From Neoconidiobolus thromboides FSU 785 (Eukaryota > Fungi > Entomophthoromycota), in assembly GCA_025603075.1 (NCBI GenBank), contig MU626356.1:17305-81304 (forward strand): a stretch of DNA of 64,000 bases, read 5' to 3'. The translations under genes and the position numbers were made by a program. Shown here one piece after another: positions 7,540-36,187 of this stretch (positions within the stretch are counted from its first letter, which is position 1; the number at the start of each line of letters is the position of its first letter). The notes under the pieces were generated by a model. It saw only the letters and a program-made list of their open reading frames with translations, had not been told where the DNA came from and ran no database searches.

Positions 7540-8141
7540 CGTTTCTAAAGATCAAGTAATATGTTTATTTGTAAAGAGTTTGATGCCGTATTAATTTTTT
7601 GTCATAACCTTATAATTTCAACAACTATTTTATCAATCTATAAGAAATGTTACTTATTCTTTTCTAATTTACCCTAAATAATGCAACTTTGCATTAATGA
7701 GCGAATTTCATTAAAATCTTTTTTATTGGTTTGAAGTATTTGCAAATTAGTTAAAGTGAGGAAGAAAGTCCACCTTTTCAAATTGTAATAAAATAGCAAA
7801 TATGAAATCTTAATTTGTTTTAAAAAATTCAAATTAAACAATATGATTATACTATAAATAGCTCAAATAAATAAAACTATATAAATATATTTTAACAGAT
7901 GACTGATCAACAATATGACAAAGCAAGTTTAAAAGCACAATTATATAACAAAAAGCTGTATAATAAAGGAAATATCAAATAGATTTAAATAAAAAAATTT
8001 AATTTGATGTCATTTTAAAATTGCCAATAAACTTTATAAAGAGTATCAGAAATCTGAACTTTTAAAAGTATTATTTTCAAAGCTATCTCTTGCAGTTTTA
8101 ATCCTTGATATATCACAAAGCTATACACATGACAATGATGT

Positions 8142-15753: not shown

Positions 15754-17400
15754 TTAAGCTTTGGTTTGTCCTTGACGATGAGCACCAGCAGCTTCTTTAT
15801 TATTATGACGACGATTTGAGTTGTTCTTAGCTTTTGATTGATCCTTATTAACATCAGCAATAGCATTGTCTCTCTTCTCGATGCCATTCGCTATAATTTG
15901 AGTTTGGAAAACAGCGTCCCTAGTCTTTTCAATCATTTGACGATAGATTGATGTATTGATAGGGTTCATCACTACTGAATTATCATTAAAATCAATCTTA
16001 GCGTCAACTCTAGCATCGCGGATAAGGTTGACAATCCATTTTTCGCCTTCTTCAGGTGATAAATTGAGTAATTTAGCAAGCTGTGTAATGTTGATACGTT
16101 GATTAATACGACAATAAGCTTCTAAGATTAAGGTACGAGCGTTTTCAAGGAACTCATCAAGTGAAGAAACTAAAAAGAAATCATTGGCAAAAAGATTTTC
16201 GCATTCTTTAAGTTTAGATTGAGCTTCATCAAAGTCAAATCTTACATAAAGTGCTTCTGTAAACTGAGTGATAGGGTCATTGTAAGCATGTGCTTCTTGT
16301 TGTACTATTTTAATCAAATCTTTGATAACATTCTTACGACGACGGTTGATAATAGCAGCTGCAGATATATAACGTAAAATCCATGGACATGAAGTTTGTA
16401 TAGTGTTGATATATTGAGGTTGGAAAAATAAATCTAACAAATATTCTTTACCCTTTTGATGATTAAAGAATACAAATAAGGACCAATGGATGAGGAAAGT
16501 TCTTTGATGAAGTTGATGAATGGAAGAAGTATCTCTCTATATAAATATAAGTACCCTGTTTTTCATATTAAATTATAATATTACGTTTGTTTCAATAGAA
16601 TCTTTCACTTTTTGTAACTCTGTAAAAGCATTATCCCAGTTTCCAGTAAGAATCTCAGAAGCTAATCTACCCCAAAGAGAAGATAATAATAAGTTATCAT
16701 CTACGGACTATAAAAATTAAGTAAAGCTTATCAAAACGATTCATTTATAAAATTACCAAAACTTGAAAGTGATAAAGCATTTCAGAACAACCACCATAGT
16801 TACCACAGCTAAACTGAAACTGTCCAAACTTATATAAAGTTTCAATTGATTTTGCATCAAACTTAAATAAAAAATGAGTATTTTAATTCATCGTAAAACT
16901 ACCTTCTATTGTCTATTATATTTTATAATCAACTTACATCATGATTCTCATTTAAAAACTTCAAGTTAAACTCTTTGTCCTGACGTAAGGCCGAAATAAC
17001 TTCTGGGTTTTCAATAACATCCATAACTTTTTGAGCTTGCTTATTTAATTCCTCTAAGTTACTTAACACTTTCTCACGTTTGACAATAAACTCTAAATTC
17101 TTGTTAATACCATGTTGATAATACTCTTGCTTTTTAAACTACCTTCTGGAACCTCTTCAGTACTGTTCAATTCCTTATAAAGTTTGGCAGTAAAATCCAC
17201 CATATTTGTTTTGGAAAGTAAATCGTACTTGGCTTTTGTGACATCAGTAGAGTTATAGATCTAAGTTTATATGTTAAATTTATTGTATATCTTCAAATAA
17301 CCAAAGCTACCTCATTGATCGATAAAAATTCTAATAATGGAAAGGTAAGATGACGGTCCAAATAAGGTACCATCTTCGCGGTTAAATCATATTCGGCCAT
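15754..17400 (-). CDS. INT6: Translation initiation factor eIF3 subunit E (Int6)
   Basis: Starts [26 protein letters not shown]. Also [31 protein letters not shown] and the PCI domain [11 protein letters not shown]...[11 protein letters not shown]...[16 protein letters not shown]. Confidence 0.95.
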
Positions 17401-18169
17401 TATTGGGACTCGTTGAGTTTTATTAAAACAAGGGATTTAATGGCTTGAGGTTTATTTTTTTAGACATTTTTTGTAAATTTGAATTTTGGATTAATATTGG
17501 ATTTATTGTGGGTTGTTTATTAGTTCTTTTAATCTAGTGATTAAATAAAAAATAAATGGTTTAAAAAATAAATAAAAAATAAAAACTACGAGTACTAGCT
17601 AATTTGAAGAAGTATATTAAGCGAATCAGATATACAATAATGGTATGATTTACTTTATTATATAAACACTGAATCAAGAAGCATGCTTTTGATCATAATT
17701 TGCTATAATAGTAAAAGTTCATATCACTTTGAATCTAATAGGATAATTTTTTAATTATTTTAATTTTTAAACTCAAAATTGATCAAATGCTTAAACTGAA
17801 ATAGAAAAAACACTCTTTTAATTAACTAATAGAGATCATCATTATAAACTTATTGCTTTGAAAAGTAAATTGTATTTTTTAAATGTAATATCGAAATAAT
17901 CGAATTTAATAAGATAAATTCAAAATTACTGGAAAAGATCGTTATTAGAGTATCAGATAAGAGATGAGCTATAATTCTAAAATCTATATATATCCTTTGG
18001 TAATTCTATTTGATTAAATCAACACTCCAATTAATTATTCCGTTCAAGTACCAAAATTAGTACAATTAAAATTTTATCTAAAACTGTCTTACTTTTTTAA
18101 CATTCAAATTTTTAGCTTTAGTATAGATAGAGAGTAGAATGATCAAGGGAACGAGTAACTACGACATAA

Positions 18170-19447
18170 TATTGACCAAATTTTTAATAAAATAAACAAT
18201 GAGGCTGTAAGCAACGAGATCAAAGCGATATTATGAGAGTCAGTAATTAATCAGGGAAAGATTATAAAAAAGGTAACAGAAGAATTGTGTATAAACTATA
18301 ATGCTATGTCATCAATTGTTTTTCGAGAAAAAAGGAGATTATATGAGTAAGCATTTACAGAAGGAAGAATGGAAGATGACAAATCGAAAGATGTCGTTAC
18401 TAAAATATAAAGCAAGTGATGGAAATGAGAAAGATATGTGGGAGTTAATAGCCAAGCAAGAGGCATCTTCAAAAGAATCGATCCATCAGTTAGGGATTAG
18501 CTCTAGTAGTGCGAGCATAATTTCGTATGAAAGGGAAAAACGATCAGAAGACAACTTAAATTACCGAGAAGCGAATGTGAAGGGTAATGGTAAACTAAAA
18601 GTATTCCTGCACAGTTTTTGTGGCAAAAAGTCTTCAGAGTATAAAGAAGATTCGTTAAACATAATTACTAAGCATAAGAAATCCCCAAAGAAAGCAGTAG
18701 AATTATTGTCTCTTAACTTTCATTCTCCAAAAGCAATCGCTTGTAGGGAAACGAAAATAATAAGAGAGACTGTAGCCAATAAAGGAATAAGTAGCAACAA
18801 CAATGATGACTTAGCTAATTTTATCAAATTACCATATAGTGTAATAGGCGAAGATACCAAAATGGATTTATGGGATATAGTTATGAATCAAGGAATGTCG
18901 ATCAAAAAAGCTAGCGAACAGTTTTCTATTGGTTATCGAGCTGCAAAGGAAGCTATTGCTAAAGAAAGAAAGAAAGAAAAGAGATGGAGCTACAAATAGG
19001 ATAGTGGAAAATAGTGGAGAAAATAGGAAATGCAACAATACTGTTACTAAATCATCAGGTATAAGTAGCGATACCAAGAAACAACTATGGGAGTTATTGG
19101 TTAATTGAGGAAAACCAATGAAAGAAGTAGCTAAGCAATTATTTGTTGAATACAACCCAGTGACAGAAATTATTCATAGAGAAAAAGAAAGATTAAAATT
19201 TATGAATGAACGAAAAAAAACAAAGGAAAGAAGATAGCTTAAATAGCTTTATCAGTGAAACCTATAATAAAACAACCGATGAAATTAAAAGAGAATTGCA
19301 TGAGTTTTTAGAAAAATATTTTTATTTTTTTGAACAAACATCGGATTTATTAAGGATTACATATCATAAAGCAAAAGTGGGTGTAATAAATGCAAGAAAG
19401 AAAATAAGTGAAAATGAAAATAAGTGAAAATGAAAATAAGTGAAATT
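18170..19447 (+). pseudogene. Disrupted paralog 1 of the six-HTH-repeat gene
   Basis: All six modules are recognisable (e.g. IL*ESVINQGKIIKKVTEELCINYNA, DLWDIVMNQGMSIKKASEQFSIGYRAAKEAIAKERKK, QLWELLVN*GKPMKE, LHEFLEKYFYFFEQ) but broken by TGA/TAA/TAG stops and frameshifts. The 5' boundary is approximate. Confidence 0.8.
19400..19447 (+). repeat. Tandem 16-bp repeat x3 (GAAAATAAGTGAAAAT)
   Basis: Read directly at the 3' end of paralog 1; the third copy has one mismatch. Confidence 0.85.
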
Positions 19448-20230
19448 AATTGCTCAGAGATCGATAAAATAAAGGACGCCAAAGGCTGTTGGAAGTTTAA
19501 AAAAATAATGAAACTTGAAAGATACTATCATTAATGGCAGATAATTATTATATCTTCATTAGAAATATTATTTATTACTTATTGCTGTATAAATTATTTA
19601 CTTTTAAAGCAGCAGGGGATTACATATGGTTGTGAAAATAAAGTGCAAAAATCAAATTTGTGAAATTTTATCACAAACAGTTTTACTTAACTTCCAATAA
19701 AAATAAATTTTAAATATTGTATTATATAAAAAGTGAATGAAGTACTAAAACATAAAACGCTTTCGTAAAATCTTTAACACCCCCTGCTTTAAATTTTAAG
19801 TAAATTATATTATTAATAAATATTTTACATAATTAAAATGTTAAATATTATTTTAAGCTTAAATATTGAGCAAACTGTTGACTGAATTGGCAGAAAAAAC
19901 ATAACCTTTTGATTAGTTGATTGAAAATTTTGTTATTATAAATGTGCCTTAAAATGGGGATTTCTATTTTTAAAGTATAGTAAAATTGAAGTATTTGACC
20001 ATCATTTAATAAGATAAAATTTACCCAACTTGGACAGGTTCCATATCAAAATATAAAAAAAATAAGGTAATATTAAGATGATCGATTACATTTTCTAGAT
20101 TCATAACAAGTTACATTAAACTTCAACGCTTCAGTTAATGAATTGTTTTAGGCGATACAATTGATACATTAATGCCTAATTTAAAAACGATCCTCTTTAT
20201 TTAGTTTTAATTACCATTTTTTAGATTCCA

Positions 20231-21547
20231 ATGGATAAAGAAACAGGTGAACAAAGTAAAAAGAAGTCAAAATACAGTAGTAAGCAATTGAGTCAAACTC
20301 GTAAAACAATTACTAAAGAAGAGAAAAAGAATTTGTGGAATTTAATAGTCAATGAAGGAAAGCCAATAAAAGAAGCATCTGAAGAGTTATCTATTAACTA
20401 TGGTAGTGCTTTAAAGATTATTGCTAAAGAAAGAAAACGAATCAAAGATGCTGCCAATGCTGGAGAAATCAATGTAGAAAAAGACGATAAACTAAAAAAT
20501 TATATTAATAGAAAACGTAATAATATAAGTGATGATATCAAAAAAAAATTATGGGAGTTAACAATTAATCAGGGAAAACCTATGAAAGAAGCAGCAGAAA
20601 ACTTGGCAATTAATAAGGAAAGTGTCAAACGGATTATCTATAATGAAAGAAAAAAAATAAAGGAAAGTTTAAATATTGGAGAAATCAATGGAAAAACTAA
20701 TGGTAATTCAAATGAAAATGGCATCCAACTTTATGTTAAAAAACCCAAAGAATATAAAATTAAATTATTGGAGTTGGTTATTGATCAGGGAAAATCTATA
20801 AAAGAAGCAGTAGAACAACTGTCAGTTAATTTTCGTACTGCAGAAACCATTGTTTATAGAGAAAGAAAAAGGCTAAGACAAGCTGTAGCTGCTGGTGAAG
20901 TAAATACTGAAGGAAATGATCATTTAGTTAATTTTATCAATAAATCAGTTGATACAATAGGTGAAGATGCCAAAAAGGATTTATATGAGTTAGTTATTAA
21001 TCAAGGAAAAACTATTAAAGAAGCCAGCGAACAGTTGTGTATTGGCTATGGAAGTGCAAAAAAAATCATTGCTAAAGAAAGAAAGAAAATTGAAGAAGCT
21101 ACAGTTGGAGTGGAGGGAAACAATGTGGGGGATGGTAAACGTAATAATGTTGCTACCAAACCAGCAGATAAAATTAGTAATGATACCAAAAAACAGTTAT
21201 GGGAGTTGGTGGTTAATCAAGGAAAGCCAATGAAAGAAGCGGCATCAATGATGTCACTTAAGTATAATACAGCAATGAAAATTATTTATCGAGAGAAAAA
21301 GAAATTAAATATTGATGCAAGTGCAGGAAATATAAGTGTAGAAGAAAATGAATTGAATAATTTTATCGACGAAGCTTGTAATAGAATGAATAATGAAATT
21401 AAAAATGGATTACAAGAATTAGTTGAAAAATACTCTTATTCTCAAAAACAAGCATCTAAGTTATTAGGTATTATAGCTCGTAAAGCAACCACTATTTTAT
21501 CAAATGAAAAAAAGAAATTAAAAGGGGCAAATAATGAGGAAAGTTAA
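20231..21547 (+). CDS. Intronless 438-aa protein of six tandem helix-turn-helix modules (Tc1/IS630-transposase-like DNA-binding repeat, no catalytic domain)
   Basis: Uninterrupted ORF with consensus Ix(D/E)xxKxxLWELVINQGKxIKEAxExLxIxxxxAxxIIxxERKK six times at a ~72-aa period. Highly basic; no DDE/D motif seen. Confidence 0.8.
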   Translation: MDKETGEQSKKKSKYSSKQLSQTRKTITKEEKKNLWNLIVNEGKPIKEASEELSINYGSALKIIAKERKRIKDAANAGEINVEKDDKLKNYINRKRNNISDDIKKKLWELTINQGKPMKEAAENLAINKESVKRIIYNERKKIKESLNIGEINGKTNGNSNENGIQLYVKKPKEYKIKLLELVIDQGKSIKEAVEQLSVNFRTAETIVYRERKRLRQAVAAGEVNTEGNDHLVNFINKSVDTIGEDAKKDLYELVINQGKTIKEASEQLCIGYGSAKKIIAKERKKIEEATVGVEGNNVGDGKRNNVATKPADKISNDTKKQLWELVVNQGKPMKEAASMMSLKYNTAMKIIYREKKKLNIDASAGNISVEENELNNFIDEACNRMNNEIKNGLQELVEKYSYSQKQASKLLGIIARKATTILSNEKKKLKGANNEES

Positions 21548-21676
21548 GTAATTATAAGCTAGAAAATACAAAGAATATCAAACATTGCTTTAAATTTAAA
21601 AATACAATGAAATCTAATGAGTTTTACTTTTATTGTTTGATATTTACCATATTTTGATATGAGCTACATGAAATAA

Positions 21677-24600
21677 TTATTCATTATTTACTATCTTATA
21701 GGTGATAATACTCAAAGCAGGAGATAATTAGTTATAGTTGAAAATAAAATCAAAGTGACAATTTTAATTTTGTAATAACTTTTAACTTTAAGTTTTATAA
21801 TTAAAATGAATTGCTTAGTTTAAAGTAATTGCAAAAAAAATTTTAATAGTTTTTTAATCTTTCCTTTACTTTTTATAAAACACAAAGTTTAAATAAATTT
21901 AAAATAAACAATATATAAAATATTTATTTTTAACATAATAATATGAGGAAATTACCTTATTATAGGATGTTAATATTAAAACTATGAATAAAATAGTCAA
22001 ATGTATTTTACTTTATTTTCCAATTTTATTCAATTTATTTAAAGTCATCATACTGTTTTTACTTTTGATATTTAAAAAAACTTACGTTATATTTGAATTC
22101 TCAGTAACGCCTATTTATTACTTTGTTTTATCCTTTTGCATTAATTAATTCCAATCAAATGAAAAATACTTGCACAAAGTAATGGAATATTCAATGAATT
22201 TTCTAAAATAAGATTATTTTGTATTAAATTAGGGTAATTAAAATTAGTATCTTCAATCCATTTTAAATTTATAAATGGATAAGATTCATTATTAAAGATA
22301 TTAAATTTCAATGTTATTAATGAATCAGGTAACTGAAATACAACAGTTATCTTATTTGGCACTTCTTCTATTAGTAACCAAATTCTTATTACATATTCTA
22401 AAATAAAGTAATATTAAATACCAATATTAAATATGTTTGTATATATATCGTTATTATAATAATCAATCTTACTTTTTTCAATTTCATAATCAAACGAGTC
22501 TAGTTCTGGTTGATATGTTTTTTCATTAAAACAAGATTGTATTAATGTGTTAAATCTTAATTGATGTCGAATTACCTAATAATTACAAAATAAGTTGGTT
22601 TATTATTATTGTATTAATAATATCTTACATTGAATACAGGCAATAATTGAGTTGGATGATTAATTGGTACCTTTAATAAATTATAACAAATATTATGTTC
22701 GCTCATTAACCCATATCTTTGTAATTTAGTATGACTATTTAATTTCTATTCAAAATAATATTTATATAAATATAATATATAATATATAATATATAATATA
22801 TAATATATAATGTAATATAATTCAATACTTACTGCTATCCATGGACTATTATTAATATCGATATTATTATTAACATTGAATGGTTCAATAAATTCTTGTT
22901 TTTGAATTGACTCATTTATCTAAATATTGTTTTAAGTATTATTTAAATTGATTCAGTAGACTCGCTTACTAATACTTCACAAAGATCGGGGATAGGTTGA
23001 GGATCAAATAAGAATAGAAATTCATTTGCTAAAAGAATATAAATCAACATAATAATAATAGTAATAAACTTACTCAATAATTGTCCAACAATAATTGAAA
23101 TCTTAATGATTAATTGTTGACAAATAAGAATTGGTTGTTTTAAATTAAAATACCATTTTAATGGTATTGATAGTTGATGAGCTAACTCAGTATTATTTGG
23201 ATCAAAATATAGCATTTTAATTGGTTGGTTTATTAATGGATAAGTATGTGGCATTATATTAAAGATATTTTGATTGCCTTCATTTAATTGAATGTTTTCT
23301 TCTTCTAAGTAAATATATTTTAATATTGTATTTGGTAATACTAAACTATGCATTCCTGATTCTTCTATATTTAAATCTCCCATAATAAATTGTTTATTAA
23401 TATCTTTGTCTCCTAAAAACAAAACAAAACAAAACATTTTAATGTTATCTTGTGTTTATTTTATTACAATATATTTACCTTTTTTAAATAGTTCAATTAC
23501 ATCTTCTGTTTTGTTGATATTAATTGAGTTAGTCCAAAATATTATAGTTGGACCAATAACATTATGAAATTTTAATGGAATTCCATGGCCAAAATCAAAT
23601 AATCGATTACAATCACCGTCACTAATAGATAATATATTATTATTGTTACTATTATTACTATTCAAATTACTTCTCATTGTTAAATAAAAAATCAATATCT
23701 TTATTCATTACATCAATCAAATGAAATAAATTAATATTTTGATTTTTTAAATATTTTGAATTCAATTTAGTTATAAATTCTAAATTATTTCGAAATTGCT
23801 CCATATCATTTATTCTATATTGAAAATAGATTAATTAATAAATAGTACAAAATTATTAAATCTATTTTTACTTTATATTTTTAAGTAATACATTTTCAAT
23901 CTATAAAAATTAAATTAGTTTAATTACAAATTAAATAGTTTTAAACTTACAACATCCTTTTTTAACTCTTGATTGGGATGATCAATGATATCTACGCTAA
24001 CACCTACTTTTGTAAATTTAATCTAATAATAATTAATTATAACAATTAACTAAATAATGATAAATTCTATTTTACATCTAAAACAAATTGATGTTCACTA
24101 AAAGTATATAAATTGTGATCATCTGTTGTATCATAAAAAAATTCTAATCTATAAAAACAAGATTAATTAAACATATATTTCAATTGAAATATTAAATAAA
24201 TAAATAAATAAATAATAATTTACTTTAATTGTTTAGATATAAATTTAAATATACTTTTGTAATAATCTTGATTAATATCCTTTATACTCATATTATATCC
24301 AAGTCGGTTTTTTATAAAATTCAAACTTTCCGATAATTTGTTTTTCCATTTTAAAGGTATTGATTCATTCTATTTATAATAAATATTATAAAATATTTAT
24401 TATTTATTAATACTTACTTCAATACTACCATCTAACTTATTAATATCTACGGTGCTTACTAAGATTTGAAACTCATTAAAACTAGCTGGATTATTTGATA
24501 TTGACAATAATAAACTCAAATATTTATTTAAATATTCTTTTAATATAGCCATTTTACTCATTATTGTAATAGCATCATTCTTATTACTATTTGAACCAAA

Positions 24601-25384: not shown

Positions 25385-26190
25385 AAGGGTCAAGAAAACA
25401 GAAGTAATTGAATCAATAAGATTAGCATTGAAGCTGGAAAGAGATTATTTGAGTTAGTATATGAACAGCAAAAGTTCATTAGAAGGATATCGAAGGAGTT
25501 GACTATTAATTTTATGACTGTAGTGTCAATTTTTGTAAAGAGCAAAAAAATAAAGGAGAGCCTAAATTTAGGAATGAAAGTTTGGAACAAGATAGTAATT
25601 TAAATCGCTATATTAATATAAGTTGCAATAAAATAAGCAAGAAGACCAAAAAAGAACCATGCAAATTATTAGTTGAATAAGGCAAGCCCATAAAAGAAAG
25701 GGCAAAAAAAATTGTCTGTCAACTATGGTATTTCACTGAACATTTTTTTAAAAAGAGAAAGTTTAAAAGATACTGTAAATGCAGAAGAAATAAATGTAGA
25801 AAATAATAACTTGAGTGACTTTATCGATAAAAGATGTAATAAAATAAATAAGGATATTAAAAAGGATTTGTTGGAGTTAGTATTAAATCAAGAAAAAGTC
25901 ATAAAAGAGACAGCGGAACATTTACTTATCAAATATAAAAACACATTAAATATTATTGCAATGTAAAGGAAAAGATTAAGAGAGGGTATAAATGTAGGAA
26001 AGATTGGTATAATGGAAGGCAATAAGTTACATAATTTTGTCAATAAATCTTGTGATAAAAAAACAATGAATTTAAAATGAATTTATCATACTTAGTAATC
26101 AATCAAAGAAATAATACAAAAGAAACAGCGAAGCAATCAGTCATCAATTATAATATAGCATGTAGTATTATATTAAAGGGGGAATCAGTT
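25385..26190 (+). pseudogene. Disrupted paralog 3 of the six-HTH-repeat gene (about four modules visible)
   Basis: Fragments KRLFELVYEQQKFIRRISKELTINF, KLLVE*GKPIKERAKKLSVNYGISLNI and KDLLELVLNQEKVIKETAEHLLIKY, with stops and frameshifts. Confidence 0.75.
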
Positions 26191-26643
26191 AAGAGAAAGT
26201 CAAAATAAGGGAAATCAAATATTCAAAAGCTAAAAAAATTAAAGAATAATATATACTATTGATGATGAACTGTCATTATGTTTTTATGTAAATTGTATAA
26301 GATTGATTATTTATTAGCTATATAAAATAACATTTTTTTATAAACTGGAAAGAGTTAATTATGACTATAAAGATAAAGTGTATAAAGTACTAAAAAAATT
26401 TAATATAGTCAATTTTAAACTTGACAAGATTTTATTTAAATATAAATATAAAGCTTTAATTTATAATTACAAAGTTCAAAACTATTTTTTATTTCAATAG
26501 TAAAATTTAGTTTTTAATAAAATTTAAATGTAAAAATGTTCAATGAAGTTAGAGCTATATAACAATATTTAAGTTTATATTTGTTATTACAACAGTTTTT
26601 AATACAATCTATTATTCTAGAATTTAATAAAAAAGGACAATAT

Positions 26644-26741
26644 GGTAGTATTTTTTTTGGCGTCGTTACTTTTTCCATCTTTTAAGTGCTGTTTGAGTGG
26701 AAAATTGTTAGCAAAATTCTTAAACACAAAAATACATCCCC
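26644..26741 (-). mobile_element. MITE family A copy
   Basis: GGTAGTATTTTTTTTGGCGTC...AATACATCCCC, flanked by ATAT/ATAT. Confidence 0.85.
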
Positions 26742-26961
26742 ATATGCTTTTAAAGCTTGTGATTTTGAGCAAACTGGATCTACAGCGAATAGGGCTCCAA
26801 TCTTACAATCTTATAATATTTTTTTGATGTACAAATTACATTATAATTAAAAATCTTATCTTTAGGCACTATACCGAGGGCTTCAGTCAAATTTAATCTT
26901 AGTATTAGGTTTGTGGTGATAAATAATATTCTATATTAATTATTTCTCATGATTAAAAATA

Positions 26962-32575: not shown

Positions 32576-33237
32576 AGATACTTATTTGCATATTACGACT
32601 TTGGTTAATATCAATATTGATCTTATTACATAAATTATATTGGCAAAAACTTTACTAATCTGGGAATCTCTATTAAATTTAATATAAATTTGATCAACTT
32701 ATAATATAAATTGTAATAAATGACTTAAAACTGTATTAAATACTTTTACTTTTAACAAAAAATTTATTATGAAATTTTGAGCAAAGTTTCCAAAATTCAA
32801 AATATTTAAAGGGGATAAAAAAATAAACCCGATTTGAATATTTTTATATATTAAAATAATTATAAAAAACAGTTTGGTTAGTTTACTATATTATAAATTT
32901 TATTTTTATAATCACAAATAATTAATACTTACACATTCATATAATTTATATAATAATAAGTAATTAATGATTAGCTTGGCATTTTTAACTTGTGATAATG
33001 TTTTTTGTCTTTTTTTAACTGCTTTTTTTTAAAATGTAATATTGTATATTATATAACATTTAATAAATAATAATTTAGCTGCCTTTTTTTGTAAAATAGC
33101 TACATTCCTCGATTAAACTCTATAACTTTTCTTCAATCTCATCATTTATTTTATTATGTGTCTTATTAATATAATTATTTATGTCTTTTCCTTCTATTTA
33201 TTTTTTTCTATTTGCAGCTTCTTTAAATTTTTTATAT

Positions 33238-33335
33238 GGGGATGTTTTTTTTGTCTTTATTACTTTTTCCATTTTTAAGCACTATTTGAGTGGAAAGGTT
33301 ATCAGCAAAATTCTTAAACGAAAAAATACATCCCC
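33238..33335 (-). mobile_element. MITE family A copy inserted in HTH paralog 4
   Basis: GGGGATGTTTTTTTTGTC...AATACATCCCC, flanked by ATAT/ATAT. Confidence 0.9.
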
Positions 33336-33946
33336 ATATAAATAAGCTATTTTATATTATCATGTTCAATAAATGAACTTACTACTACTTTTTTAATAGG
33401 TTTTGTTTTTTTGTTTTTTTTACCTATCTTATCGTTTATTTTGTTCATGTTTATTTAAATTATCCTCTTTTTATACTTTATTTTTTTATTTTTTTCAACT
33501 TTTAATTTTTATTATAAGTAATAGTTTCTACAGTACTATATTTAATAAACAATTCTTTCTCTACTTTTTTTTCAAAGCTTTTTTTTATTTAATTACCAAC
33601 TTTTATAAATTTTTTTAAGTACCTATTTTATTATTAAATTTTCTAATAAGATGTAGTAAGTTGTTATTGCTTTTAATATCCATCTTTTCTATATTTGCTT
33701 TATTTTTACTTTTTTTTAACACTAGTTTTTAACGCGCTGCTATAACTAATAGATTGTTTCTTTATTGTTTCTTTAAAAACATCTTTTGTTTGACTACTAA
33801 CTTCTATGAATCTTCCTTATTTTCATTACTTGTTTATCGCCTGTTTTAATAATAACACTCTTAGATCTACCATTCTCTTCCATATTCTTTTACCTTGCAC
33901 TTATGTTTTTATACAGCCTTTTTTCGTTTTTCTACAAACAAATTAT

Positions 33947-34042
33947 GGGGATGTGTTTTTGTATTTAAGAATTTTACTCAATTTTTCCGCTCAAATAGCG
34001 CTTAAAAATGGAAAAAGTAATGAAGACAAAAAAAACATCCCC
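33947..34042 (+). mobile_element. MITE family A copy inserted in HTH paralog 4
   Basis: GGGGATGTGTTTTTG...AAAAAAAACATCCCC, flanked by TTAT/TTAT. Confidence 0.9.
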
Positions 34043-34529
34043 TTATGCTTCAATATAATATTTAATAAATAATGGTTCAACTGCTTCTTTTATAGACTTT
34101 TTTCAATTGCTAACTTATATAATTCTGTTTTGGCCTTTTTACTTAACTTATTTTAGGTTTCATCACCACTGTTTTCTTGTTTCTTATTAATTTGTTTATT
34201 TTTCCATTAAGACCTGTGATTTCAATTACTAAAACTAAAATAAGTACGAAGTTCTTAAATTAAGCAAAATGTACCAGTTTTGCTTCTTGATCAAATAATA
34301 TTCAATACCAAATTTATCCACATTGTACTTTATGCATATAGTAATATTGAACTTATTTACCCTAAGCTGACAAACTATAGGATTTTTAATAGAAAAATTG
34401 ATTAATTTACTATATTTAACTTGAAACGCTTACTATGTCATCAAAAAAATTGCTATTTAATTGGATAATTGATTTTTAGATATTAATGGAAATGACTCTC
34501 AATCCTTTAATGATATCTTTTGTATTAAA

Positions 34530-36187
34530 ATGGGTAGAAGGCGTTCAGCTGTAAAAAAGCAAAAACAAAAAAGTACGTACAATTGTTTAGATTAGTATAG
34601 TGAGTCTGATGTAAAATAATCTTATTTGAAACCAACAGTTAAGCATTTTAGTAAATTTGGATCCATCATCTGATATAGCAAACAGTGTAGTGCCAAGTGA
34701 AGACTTGATTTACAAAAAAGAAAAGCCGGACATAATAATTAGATACCTAGGATGTCAGTATGTAGATCCAGAAGATGCAAATTATAAATGTGAAAATTTC
34801 AAATCGTTTATTTTTGATAATGACAAAATCAAAAAAATATATATATGTAGCGAACACCTTTTATATTCATCAGACTCGTCCCAAAGCGAAGAAGGTAATG
34901 TAAAAAATATTGGTAATAGATTGCCTTATGACACGGATTGCACTGTACGGTATTGTTCTTATTTTGATGAATATGGAAGCTACTGTAAAAAAACTGATAT
35001 ATCAGTAATTGATTATGGTATGCCTATTGAAAGATGGTTTTGTTATAACCACCAGATGATGCATAGAATGGAAGAGCAATCAAATAATTCGAATAAAAAT
35101 GAAAATTACCTACACGAAAGGTATTGCACCAAAACTTTAAACAATCTGAAAATTTGACTAGAACCTTTAGGCTTCCAAGGATCCTTTGTCCGTCTTCTGA
35201 TCTTAGTAGGTAAAGACAGTTTGTAAAATTAAATCACAAACTAATCAATAAAGCTATTCTGAAGAACATAAATCATTTAGAGCATCAATCTCAAACGACA
35301 AAAGTAATGAAAGTGAAAATTACCTACATGAAAGGTATTTGCACCAAAACTTTAAACAATCTGAAAATTTGACTAGAACCTTTAGGCTTCCAAGGATCCT
35401 TTGTCCGTCTTCTGATCTTAGTAGGTAAAGACAGTTTGTAAAATTAAATCACAAACTAATCAATAAAGCTATTCTGAAGAACATAAATCATTTAGAGCAT
35501 CAATCTCAAATGACAAAAGTAATGAAAGCAATCAAAGTGATGAAAGCGTCTATAGTAAAAAGCCAATACCATCCTCGCTATTAAAAGGTTTAAGCAATGA
35601 TGTAATTGTGAACTTGAAAGAAATTTATAATAAACAAGGAGATAGTAAATCGGGGGACATTCATATTTATGCAACATTACCGCCAGGAAATAATAAAAAT
35701 AACAGTGCCTCTAAAAGCACTAAATCAAAGCTAGCTTCGTGGAAATCAGGAGGGAAAGTTTACTACAAAATTGGAACTTCTATGGATATAAGGTTATCAA
35801 ATCGAGATAAATTAATACAATGTCCTGTATTCAAATCGTGTTGCAAATCTGATTCGCCATTAAATGTTAACTATTTATTATCAATTCAATGTAATGACAT
35901 CTACAAATTAAAAGAGTTAATCAAACTCCATTTAAAACAAAAACTTGTTCCTTTTGGAAAGGCGAGTAAAGTAAGGTTTATGGTAATATCAAAAAATCAA
36001 TTTTATAATTTTATAGAATATTTGTAAAGGATGTGAAAGCAACCATGAAGACTGGTTTCTAGTAGATAGAAGTATATATTTTAAATTACTTACGGAAGGC
36101 TTTGTTGCATTGAAGGATTTTTACCCTGGGTGGAAAAATATAAAGAATATCGTACTTAAATGGAGTGACCATATCAATAACAGCTGA
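34530..36187 (+). CDS. Protein with two CxnCxnCx2H zinc-finger-like motifs and a T5orf172/MUG113 (GIY-YIG-like) domain
   Basis: Hand-spliced open frame: C..C..CSEH and C..C..CYNH motifs, then GDIHIYA...YYKIGTS...IQC...LKELIKLHL...CKGCESNHEDWF...GWKNIKNIVLKWSDHINNS*. Six GT-AG introns keep the frame; exon 1 is the least certain. Confidence 0.65.
35101..35528 (+). repeat. Tandem duplication, 214-bp unit x2, containing two introns and two exon pieces
   Basis: The copies start at 35101 and 35315 and differ by two substitutions and a 1-bp intronic indel. Confidence 0.95.

Follow-up and report, generated by a model that had tools for sequence, protein, structure and literature searches.

What is a protein that consists of six copies of a transposase-like helix-turn-helix (HTH) unit and has no catalytic domain, and what might its host use it for? 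This question is raised by a gene of the fungus Neoconidiobolus thromboides FSU 785, which lies at 20231-21547 (+) of the window analysed here, a stretch of 64,000 nucleotides (nt) covering positions 17,305 to 81,304 of contig MU626356.1 (assembly GCA_025603075.1) and numbered below from its first letter. We found that the coding sequence (CDS), with its stop codon within this span, encodes a protein of 438 amino acids (aa), P0001, made of six tandem HTH modules of the PAI type, with no RED subdomain and no DDE domain, and that the gene is transcribed, spliced and, as the pattern of nucleotide differences indicates, under purifying selection. The answer that we favour, and hold to be fairly probable, is that this is a host gene in which the PAI HTH of a transposase was amplified, and that its product is a sequence-specific nuclear regulator engaging several non-identical sub-sites.

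The six-module repeat is real and far beyond chance, so that the six repeats of ~72 aa described in an earlier note, made from the sequence alone, are borne out. A motif scan of P0001 placed L-[WYLQ]-E-L anchors at residues 35, 107, 179, 251, 323 and 394, a spacing of exactly 72 aa (216 nt) in four cases and of 71 aa in one, five copies in the open reading frame (ORF) are spaced by exactly 216 nt in the DNA, and each of the six modules matched a module hidden Markov model (HMM) with an E-value between 1e-21 and 1e-35. All on the + strand, modules 1 to 5 occupy 20297-20512 (aa 23-94), 20513-20728 (aa 95-166), 20729-20944 (aa 167-238), 20945-21160 (aa 239-310) and 21161-21373 (aa 311-381), and module 6, the most divergent one and without a linker, occupies 21374-21544 (aa 382-438). 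The modules have in common the scaffold L-W/Y-E-L-V-I-N-Q-G-K-x-I-K-E-A and a basic tail; the fixed LWELVINQGK-type scaffold and the ERKK tail noted earlier are thus both real, the tail being more exactly ERK(K/R). The linkers between modules are ~25 aa, of fixed length, and carry a short extra helix, and the protein as a whole is basic (isoelectric point, pI, 9.5; 16% Lys; ~50 kDa).

The recognition helix, which had also been described as varying between modules, does indeed hold the most variable positions. Among 19 modules from three intact proteins (P0001 and its same-genome paralogs P0002 and P0003), entropy reached 2.8-3.2 bits at helix-3 positions +2, +5, +6 and +9 (residues 58, 61, 62 and 65) compared with 0.6-1.5 bits at the scaffold, where L35, L38, V39, G43, K47, A49, A50, L53, I55, Y57, A60, I63 and I64 are conserved, as is E67-R68-K69 in the tail. 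At position 61 the single-HTH transposases have an entropy of only 1.3 bits, much below that of the Neoconidiobolus arrays, and in the related arrays of Mucorales the entire recognition helix is nearly fixed between units. Taken as a description, with no selection test behind it, this pattern fits unit-specific specificities in the Neoconidiobolus arrays and one repeated specificity in those of Mucorales.

The earlier note had taken the pairs 1/4 and 2/5 as the most similar modules and, from this, supposed the duplication of a three-module block. Modules 1 and 4 are the most alike (62% core identity), but 2 and 5 (52%) are no closer than 2 and 4 (58%) or 1 and 2 (52%), and 3 and 6 are only 38% identical. 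In a module tree, 1+4 and 2+5 form groups (support 82/68 and 86/73, respectively), whereas 3+6 do not. A block duplication is possible in the light of the two tree groups, and is weakly supported because the identity of the 2/5 pair is unremarkable and 3/6 remain ungrouped.

An HTH of three helices is predicted for each module, in agreement with the HTH array proposed in the earlier note. Pfam matched the whole of P0001 to HTH_28 (4e-9), Sigma70_r4_2 (6e-9) and HTH_23 (1.5e-7), all above the cut-off, and an AlphaFold model of module 1, built with a 71-sequence alignment, reached a predicted local distance difference test (pLDDT) score of 86 and a predicted template modelling (pTM) score of 0.68, with helices at residues 7-18, 24-30 and 35-54 and a short linker helix at 64-71. 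The leading PDB fold matches to this model were all tri-helical HTHs, with Z scores of 5.6-6.7, values normal for a domain of this size and informative on the fold only, and a root-mean-square deviation (rmsd) of 1.2-2.2 Å over ~50 residues; they comprise sigma region 4, LuxR/GerE, the Pax5/Pax6 paired domains, the Myb of Cdc5, homeodomains, CENP-B(1-129), IstA and the HTHs of Tn3 resolvases. A model of the whole protein, kept out of the fold searches owing to its low confidence, still gave three helices per module, with poorly ordered linkers.

Evidence for the origin of the module came from an exhaustive search with phmmer, in which only ten of 1.84 billion cluster representatives matched P0001 (cut-off E <= 0.001), a sign of how few relatives it has in the databases. 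From the same genome these were P0002 (757 aa), P0003 (673 aa), the fragment P0009 and P0004, an ORF of a dead copy; from Mucorales they were P0005 (Pilaira), P0007 (Mucor saturninus) and P0008 (Thamnidium, named 'Transposase' in UniRef), which have 4-7 tandem HTH units; and P0010 and P0011 came from metagenome or Logan assemblies. The match to P0006 (2426 aa, 13 matched stretches), a protein with only SH3-type Pfam matches, was treated as a spurious repeat or low-complexity match. A word-index protein search, whose candidate list filled up at 8000 entries, returned the query alone and missed the paralogs found later, and is no evidence of orphan status. P0011 has one such HTH followed by HTH_32 and DDE_3 (E 3.6e-23), an architecture by which we class it as an ordinary IS630/Tc1/mariner-type transposase. 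Over 46 residues, module 1, the closest to a transposase HTH, has 59% identity (E 3e-13) to the HTH at the N-terminus of P0011, compared with 36-40% for the other modules. When P0011 was itself used as the query, 56 proteins were found at E <= 0.001, nearly all of them DDE_3 transposases and P0001 among them, and by the module HMM 35 of these DDE_3 transposases carry the module HTH once, at the N-terminus. Among PDB sequences, a profile from just the six modules had no significant match, and only the wider 71-sequence profile reached the PAI subdomain of Sleeping Beauty (PDB 2m8e and 6urs), at E 0.0012 and with the whole subdomain covered. Because of the identity to P0011, the single-HTH DDE_3 relatives and the Sleeping Beauty match, we identify the module as the PAI-type first HTH of a Tc1/mariner-superfamily transposase, and the likeness to the N-terminal HTH of Tc1/IS630 transposases that had been noticed earlier now has sequence evidence behind it.

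The other parts of a transposon were not found. Pfam detected in P0001 neither a second (RED-type) HTH (no match to HTH_32, HTH_Tnp_Tc3_2 or HTH_29), for which the transposases and the Mucorales arrays do have a match, nor a DDE_3 domain, and tblastn with the catalytic parts of five transposases found no DDE remnant in the window or at the paralog loci L003 and L004, so that the absence of a DDE domain stated in the earlier note holds beyond the ORF itself. Between the P0001 stop codon and the opposite-strand Med1 gene there are ~870 nt, and the upstream neighbour is a dead paralog. No terminal inverted repeats (TIRs) with a duplicated TA target were found around the gene: the flanking inverted matches I1 and I2 are just 42-53 nt long and 77-79% complementary, in AT-rich DNA, and were rejected as TIRs, having an arm order unfit for a single inverted repeat and BLAST E-values of only 1e-3 to 1e-4. 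A comparison of the three intact paralog loci found no common flanks or termini, the only shared sequences being the coding modules and an unrelated miniature inverted-repeat transposable element (MITE) of ~100 base pairs (bp). Because no DDE remnant, no TIRs and no shared paralog flanks were detected, we conclude that the gene is not the 5' half of a transposon, an alternative that the earlier note had itself raised for an ordinary element with TIRs.

The gene is transcribed and spliced. Logan contigs from four sequencing runs were placed on 17900-22400; their run type was guessed ('RNA?'), and the presence of a spliced joint argues for RNA. The joint, found in the runs X1, X2 and X4 and with a depth of 74.6 in X1, was mapped at 20064/20223 (cut +2), skipping from 20066 to 20225, and the skipped segment, with ends GTAATA and TTTTAG, is a GT..AG intron of 158 nt in the 5' untranslated region (UTR), at 20067-20224 (+). 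It is preceded by a non-coding exon 1 at 19986-20066 (+), whose start is a minimum given by the 81 letters upstream of the joint in X4. The 3' UTR is placed at 21548-21767 (+), the RNA contigs ending at 21759-21767, from where read depth is zero until the next gene. The ATG at 20231 was retained as the start because an in-frame stop at 20010-20012 is followed by no other ATG. Expression is therefore borne out by spliced contigs of three runs, and the description of the ORF as intronless stands for the CDS, as it does for those of P0002 and P0003 (gene spans of 3 x aa + 3), but not for the gene. Introns are indeed common around it, with at least five neighbouring genes having spans that exceed 3 x aa.

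A second version of the gene was available from organism C, in which an expressed contig of 1503 nt over 20223-21721 shows 106 differences and 4 gaps relative to the window (~93% identical); this variant recurs as a second allele or copy in the runs of organism B. Among the 28 differences listed within the ORF, 22 affect third codon positions and 23 (82%) leave the amino acid unchanged, compared with an expected synonymous share of 34% for transitions in this ORF (binomial p 3e-7), and the lone listed indel in the ORF, an insertion of 3 nt, preserves the reading frame. This excess of synonymous differences indicates purifying selection on P0001 and non-neutral evolution. None of the five replacements (K248R, V299G, T421I, I422L and K429R) falls in helix 3 of modules 1-5, so that at ~93% identity there is no sign of the diversifying selection on the recognition helices that the earlier note had in mind. 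In the organism B runs (X2 and X4; 20350-21830) two versions of the gene are seen, one near-identical to the window and one ~8% different that shares differences with organism C; these could come from two alleles or nuclei, from a pair of paralogs or from a mixture of strains. Past 21830, the sequence of the divergent version continues on the opposite strand near 19741.

Within the assembly, P0001 belongs to a small gene family that has undergone birth and death, with three intact arrays and at least two dead copies. P0002 has six intact modules, of which modules 2-5 are at 72-aa spacing, P0003 has seven with longer linkers, and both genes sit among ordinary genes on other scaffolds. Immediately upstream of the intact gene, a dead tandem paralog (18204-19421, +) retains six collinear modules ~216 nt apart in frames 3, 1, 1, 1, 2 and 3, with frameshifts and stops that include a TGG>TGA change and a stop at a conserved Q codon; its longest ORF (18301-18999) is the 232-aa protein annotated in GenBank (P0004). 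The dead paralog is transcribed at appreciable depth, one X1 contig spans it together with the spacer and the 5' exon of the intact gene, and read-through transcription from it into the intact gene is possible. A second dead paralog (25412-26253, +), with ~4 recognisable modules and several in-frame stops, sits beyond the Med1 gene relative to the intact gene, and a further candidate at 32971-34207 (-) was left out as unsupported (module HMM E 0.1-0.6; nothing by tblastn at E <= 0.01). In the module tree, each of modules 3-6 of P0001 (A) pairs with its counterpart in the dead tandem copy (U), with support of 97/75 for A3-U3, 98/92 for A4-U4, 90/0 for A5-U5 and 99/94 for A6-U6, and a further module, B5, joins A5. 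Because of this pairing, we date the differentiated six-module array to before the tandem gene duplication, and the period kept in modules 2-5 of P0002 and in the dead copy points to a constraint on the length of the linkers. At the end of the dead tandem paralog (19400-19445) there is a perfect 16-nt repeat of 2.9 copies with the unit GAAAATAAGTGAAAAT, which is polymorphic, organism B being one GAAAATAAGTGAAAAT unit short. A foldback-like element, TTTAAAGCAGCAGGGG ... CCCCCTGCTTTAAA, lies at 19604-19793, ~200-400 nt upstream of the 5' exon, and is solitary, having no second copy within the window.

How could such a protein work? On the reading that we favour, the first (PAI-type) HTH of an IS630/Tc1/mariner (DDE_3) transposase would have been amplified in tandem, with loss of the second HTH, the catalytic domain and the element's ends. 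The six units may then lie as beads on a string, joined by the ~25-aa linkers, with helix 3 of each unit placed in the major groove of DNA and the basic ERK(K/R) tail potentially adding contacts to the backbone or the minor groove. Since the exposed helix-3 residues differ between units, several non-identical sub-sites, clustered or composite, could be bound at once. The most natural guess is that the targets would be sequences descended from the ancestral transposon ends, in which case the protein could be a competitor or repressor of the element, or a transcription or chromatin factor like CENP-B/Abp1 or Pipsqueak. The gene has the marks of a domesticated transposase-derived gene, namely lost mobility functions (no DDE domain, no TIRs), expression and purifying selection, the orthology of the compared copy being unproven. 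The domestication proposed in the earlier note is supported by these marks, and the DNA binding that it attached to the array, like the multi-site reading and the target, is something that we infer from sequence.

Several observations weigh against the regulator reading and temper our confidence in it. Single modules match Pfam HTH families weakly (E 0.003-0.07), Foldseek gives the 72-aa model no E-value of 0.8 or below, and the whole-protein AlphaFold model, made without an alignment, is poor (pLDDT 56.6) and gives no confident packing between modules. The run type of the expression data is marked 'RNA?', a guess, though one for which the spliced joint speaks. The selection test rests on the 28 listed differences, with 149 more existing over the whole compared stretch, and the ~93% identical copy may be a close paralog rather than an ortholog. 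The family is known only from the N. thromboides genome and the coded sequencing runs, a shallow conservation, and in the exhaustive phmmer search no second annotated genome carried a match to it. Finally, tandem-repeat and inverted-repeat scans gave no candidate target site in the window.

It is unlikely, in our judgement, that P0001 goes as far as being a fungal counterpart of the KRAB-zinc-finger-type transposon readers, with every unit reading its own sub-site and the 72-aa spacing setting the register. One protein would then read a long composite site, for example transposon or MITE ends, and its specificity would be retuned by the birth and death of genes and by variation in helix 3. We also give only a small chance to P0001 being a functional protein whose modules no longer read DNA and act instead as protein-protein or RNA-binding units. 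HTHs are known in such roles, as for sigma region 4 with anti-sigma factors and the Cdc5 Myb in the spliceosome, and the PAI subdomain of Sleeping Beauty has been reported to mediate protein-protein contacts too. Several of the top fold matches come from non-DNA contexts (spliceosomal Cdc5, sigma4 bound in anti-sigma complexes, and proteins of the mitoribosome), and a target site is missing from the window scans; the closest sequence relatives of the modules, however, are the DNA-binding HTHs of transposases, the protein is strongly basic (pI 9.5, 16% Lys) with a conserved basic tail after every helix 3, and the variability lies on the exposed face of helix 3, as expected for DNA readers.

That the gene could be a selfish remnant without host function, either the 5' portion of a Tc1-like transposon that is decaying or non-autonomous, or a fragment captured by such an element, seems to us very unlikely, although its HTH is of transposase origin and a Mucor relative retains a DDE domain. 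The turnover of the family by birth and death, which has left at least two dead copies in the window, is compatible with such a remnant, but the three intact paralogs have no common flanking sequence, and the six differentiated modules and their spacing were kept through an old duplication. Likewise, I1 and I2 (77-79% complementary) do flank the gene as weak AT-rich inverted matches, but their quality is that of chance matches and their arms do not line up as one inverted repeat. The contig of the divergent organism B copy, which joins 21830 to the opposite strand near 19741, is a further point in favour of a remnant, to be set against the lack of any DDE remnant by tblastn in the window, the mere ~870 nt left between the stop codon and the opposite-strand Med1, and the synonymous nature of 82% of the listed differences. 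A mitochondrial Bot1p-like or sigma-like factor is extremely unlikely. The Pfam match to Bot1p (PF12298) exceeds the cut-off (27.6 bits compared with 23), and mitoribosomal small-subunit proteins are among the fold matches, but the former covers 40 of 172 profile positions (8-47), the HTH-like segment of Bot1p, and the latter have an rmsd of 6-8 Å. The Sigma70_r4_2 match reaches 35.8 bits summed over the repeats, but Pfam found no Sigma70_r2 in P0001, and the N-terminus (MDKETGEQ...) is acidic, unlike a mitochondrial presequence.

Comparison with known systems helps to place the array. P0001 shares with the Tc1/mariner transposases the three-helix PAI HTH, as seen in the identity of module 1 to P0011 and in the profile that covers the Sleeping Beauty PAI, but it has this HTH six times and not once, has no GRPR-like linker and, of the four features that define such a transposase, is missing three (RED subdomain, DDE domain and TIRs). 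Conversely, its ERK(K/R) tail and the linker 'N-x-GE-x-N ... L-x-N-F-I' are not seen in transposases. CENP-B/Abp1/Cbh and the Pax proteins are, like P0001, host proteins retaining the HTH part of Tc1/pogo-type transposases. These proteins keep two different HTHs (PAI and RED, or the pair of CENP-B_N and Tc5), whereas P0001 multiplies the first HTH only, and CENP-B also keeps a dead DDE fold, which P0001 does not have. In Drosophila Pipsqueak, the Psq motif is repeated four times in tandem, and the protein binds to GAGA repeats. By analogy, we take it as the nearest precedent for P0001, which resembles it in having tandem HTH repeats of transposase origin. In Pipsqueak, the four repeats are pogo-derived and joined to a BTB domain, whereas P0001 has six units, in a zoopagomycote fungus, and gave no match to BTB or to HTH_psq (PF05225), the latter not being among the 18 Pfam families matched at E <= 1. 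The HTH-Psq family appears in a passage of PMC10027918, citing Siegmund and Lehmann 2002, as a case of transposase-derived (pogo-type) HTH DNA-binding domains reused by the host.

The arrays of Mucorales (Mucor saturninus, Pilaira anomala P0005 and Thamnidium elegans P0008), the only further examples that we came across, likewise consist of 4-7 tandem transposase-type first HTHs, but they are only about 19-32% identical to module 1 of P0001, keep a second HTH and have near-identical recognition helices. In M. saturninus (GCA_016758985.1, L005:5023-7071, +), an intact ORF of 682 aa has five HTH1 units, a second HTH and DDE_3 (E 8e-11), and we classify it as a transposase of the Tc1/mariner type whose first HTH has been multiplied; the gene model in GenBank (P0007, 530 aa, partial) cuts it short. 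In Pilaira anomala (L006:4986-7091, +), an ORF of 696-701 aa has seven near-identical HTH1 units and the second HTH, with no DDE domain. Because of the low identity to module 1, the Mucorales arrays are probably an independent amplification in another transposase lineage. Arrays of Myb repeats, C2H2 zinc fingers and TALE repeats are also tandem series of small DNA-reading units with varying exposed residues, but they differ from P0001 in fold or origin, and the likeness, including any reading of adjacent sub-sites by P0001, is a functional analogy only. The same holds for the multi-HTH proteins of Bacteroidota (DUF7317), which were rejected as relatives on feature scores of 0.82-0.84, below the required 0.9, P0001 having no DUF7317 match.

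The window as a whole is AT-rich (~25% GC), with ordinary genes of a fungal kind (PCI/eIF3, Med1, OTCase, syntaxin, prephenate dehydratase and a perilipin-like protein). The MITE-like repeat of ~100 bp is common to the window (26639-26746) and both paralog scaffolds (L003 5058-5166 and 314-397; L004 13437-13529 and 13738-13830), at 78-84% identity, and is not placed as the termini of the HTH genes. At 35092-35528, a 215-nt unit is present in two tandem copies with 97% identity.

Host reuse of the DNA-binding domains of transposases is well known from CENP-B, Pax and Pipsqueak. What differs here is an array of the first (PAI) HTH alone, repeated six or seven times at a fixed period and with unit-specific recognition helices, and we found no description of such PAI-only arrays in the searchable literature. 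We regard the P0001 family as a lineage-restricted variant of the transposase-derived HTH proteins, confined to a narrow fungal lineage and with a predicted function. Since the Mucorales arrays appear to be independent, and one of them is still attached to an intact-looking DDE domain, our comparison suggests that tandem amplification of transposase HTHs recurs in early-diverging fungi. If P0001 were in fact a counterpart of the KRAB-type readers, it would be a modular HTH-based DNA reader of a kind not described before. More generally, if the units read DNA independently, the array would offer a small, all-helical modular scaffold for the recognition of long sites, as well as a testable case of a transposon-derived regulator or repressor in fungi.

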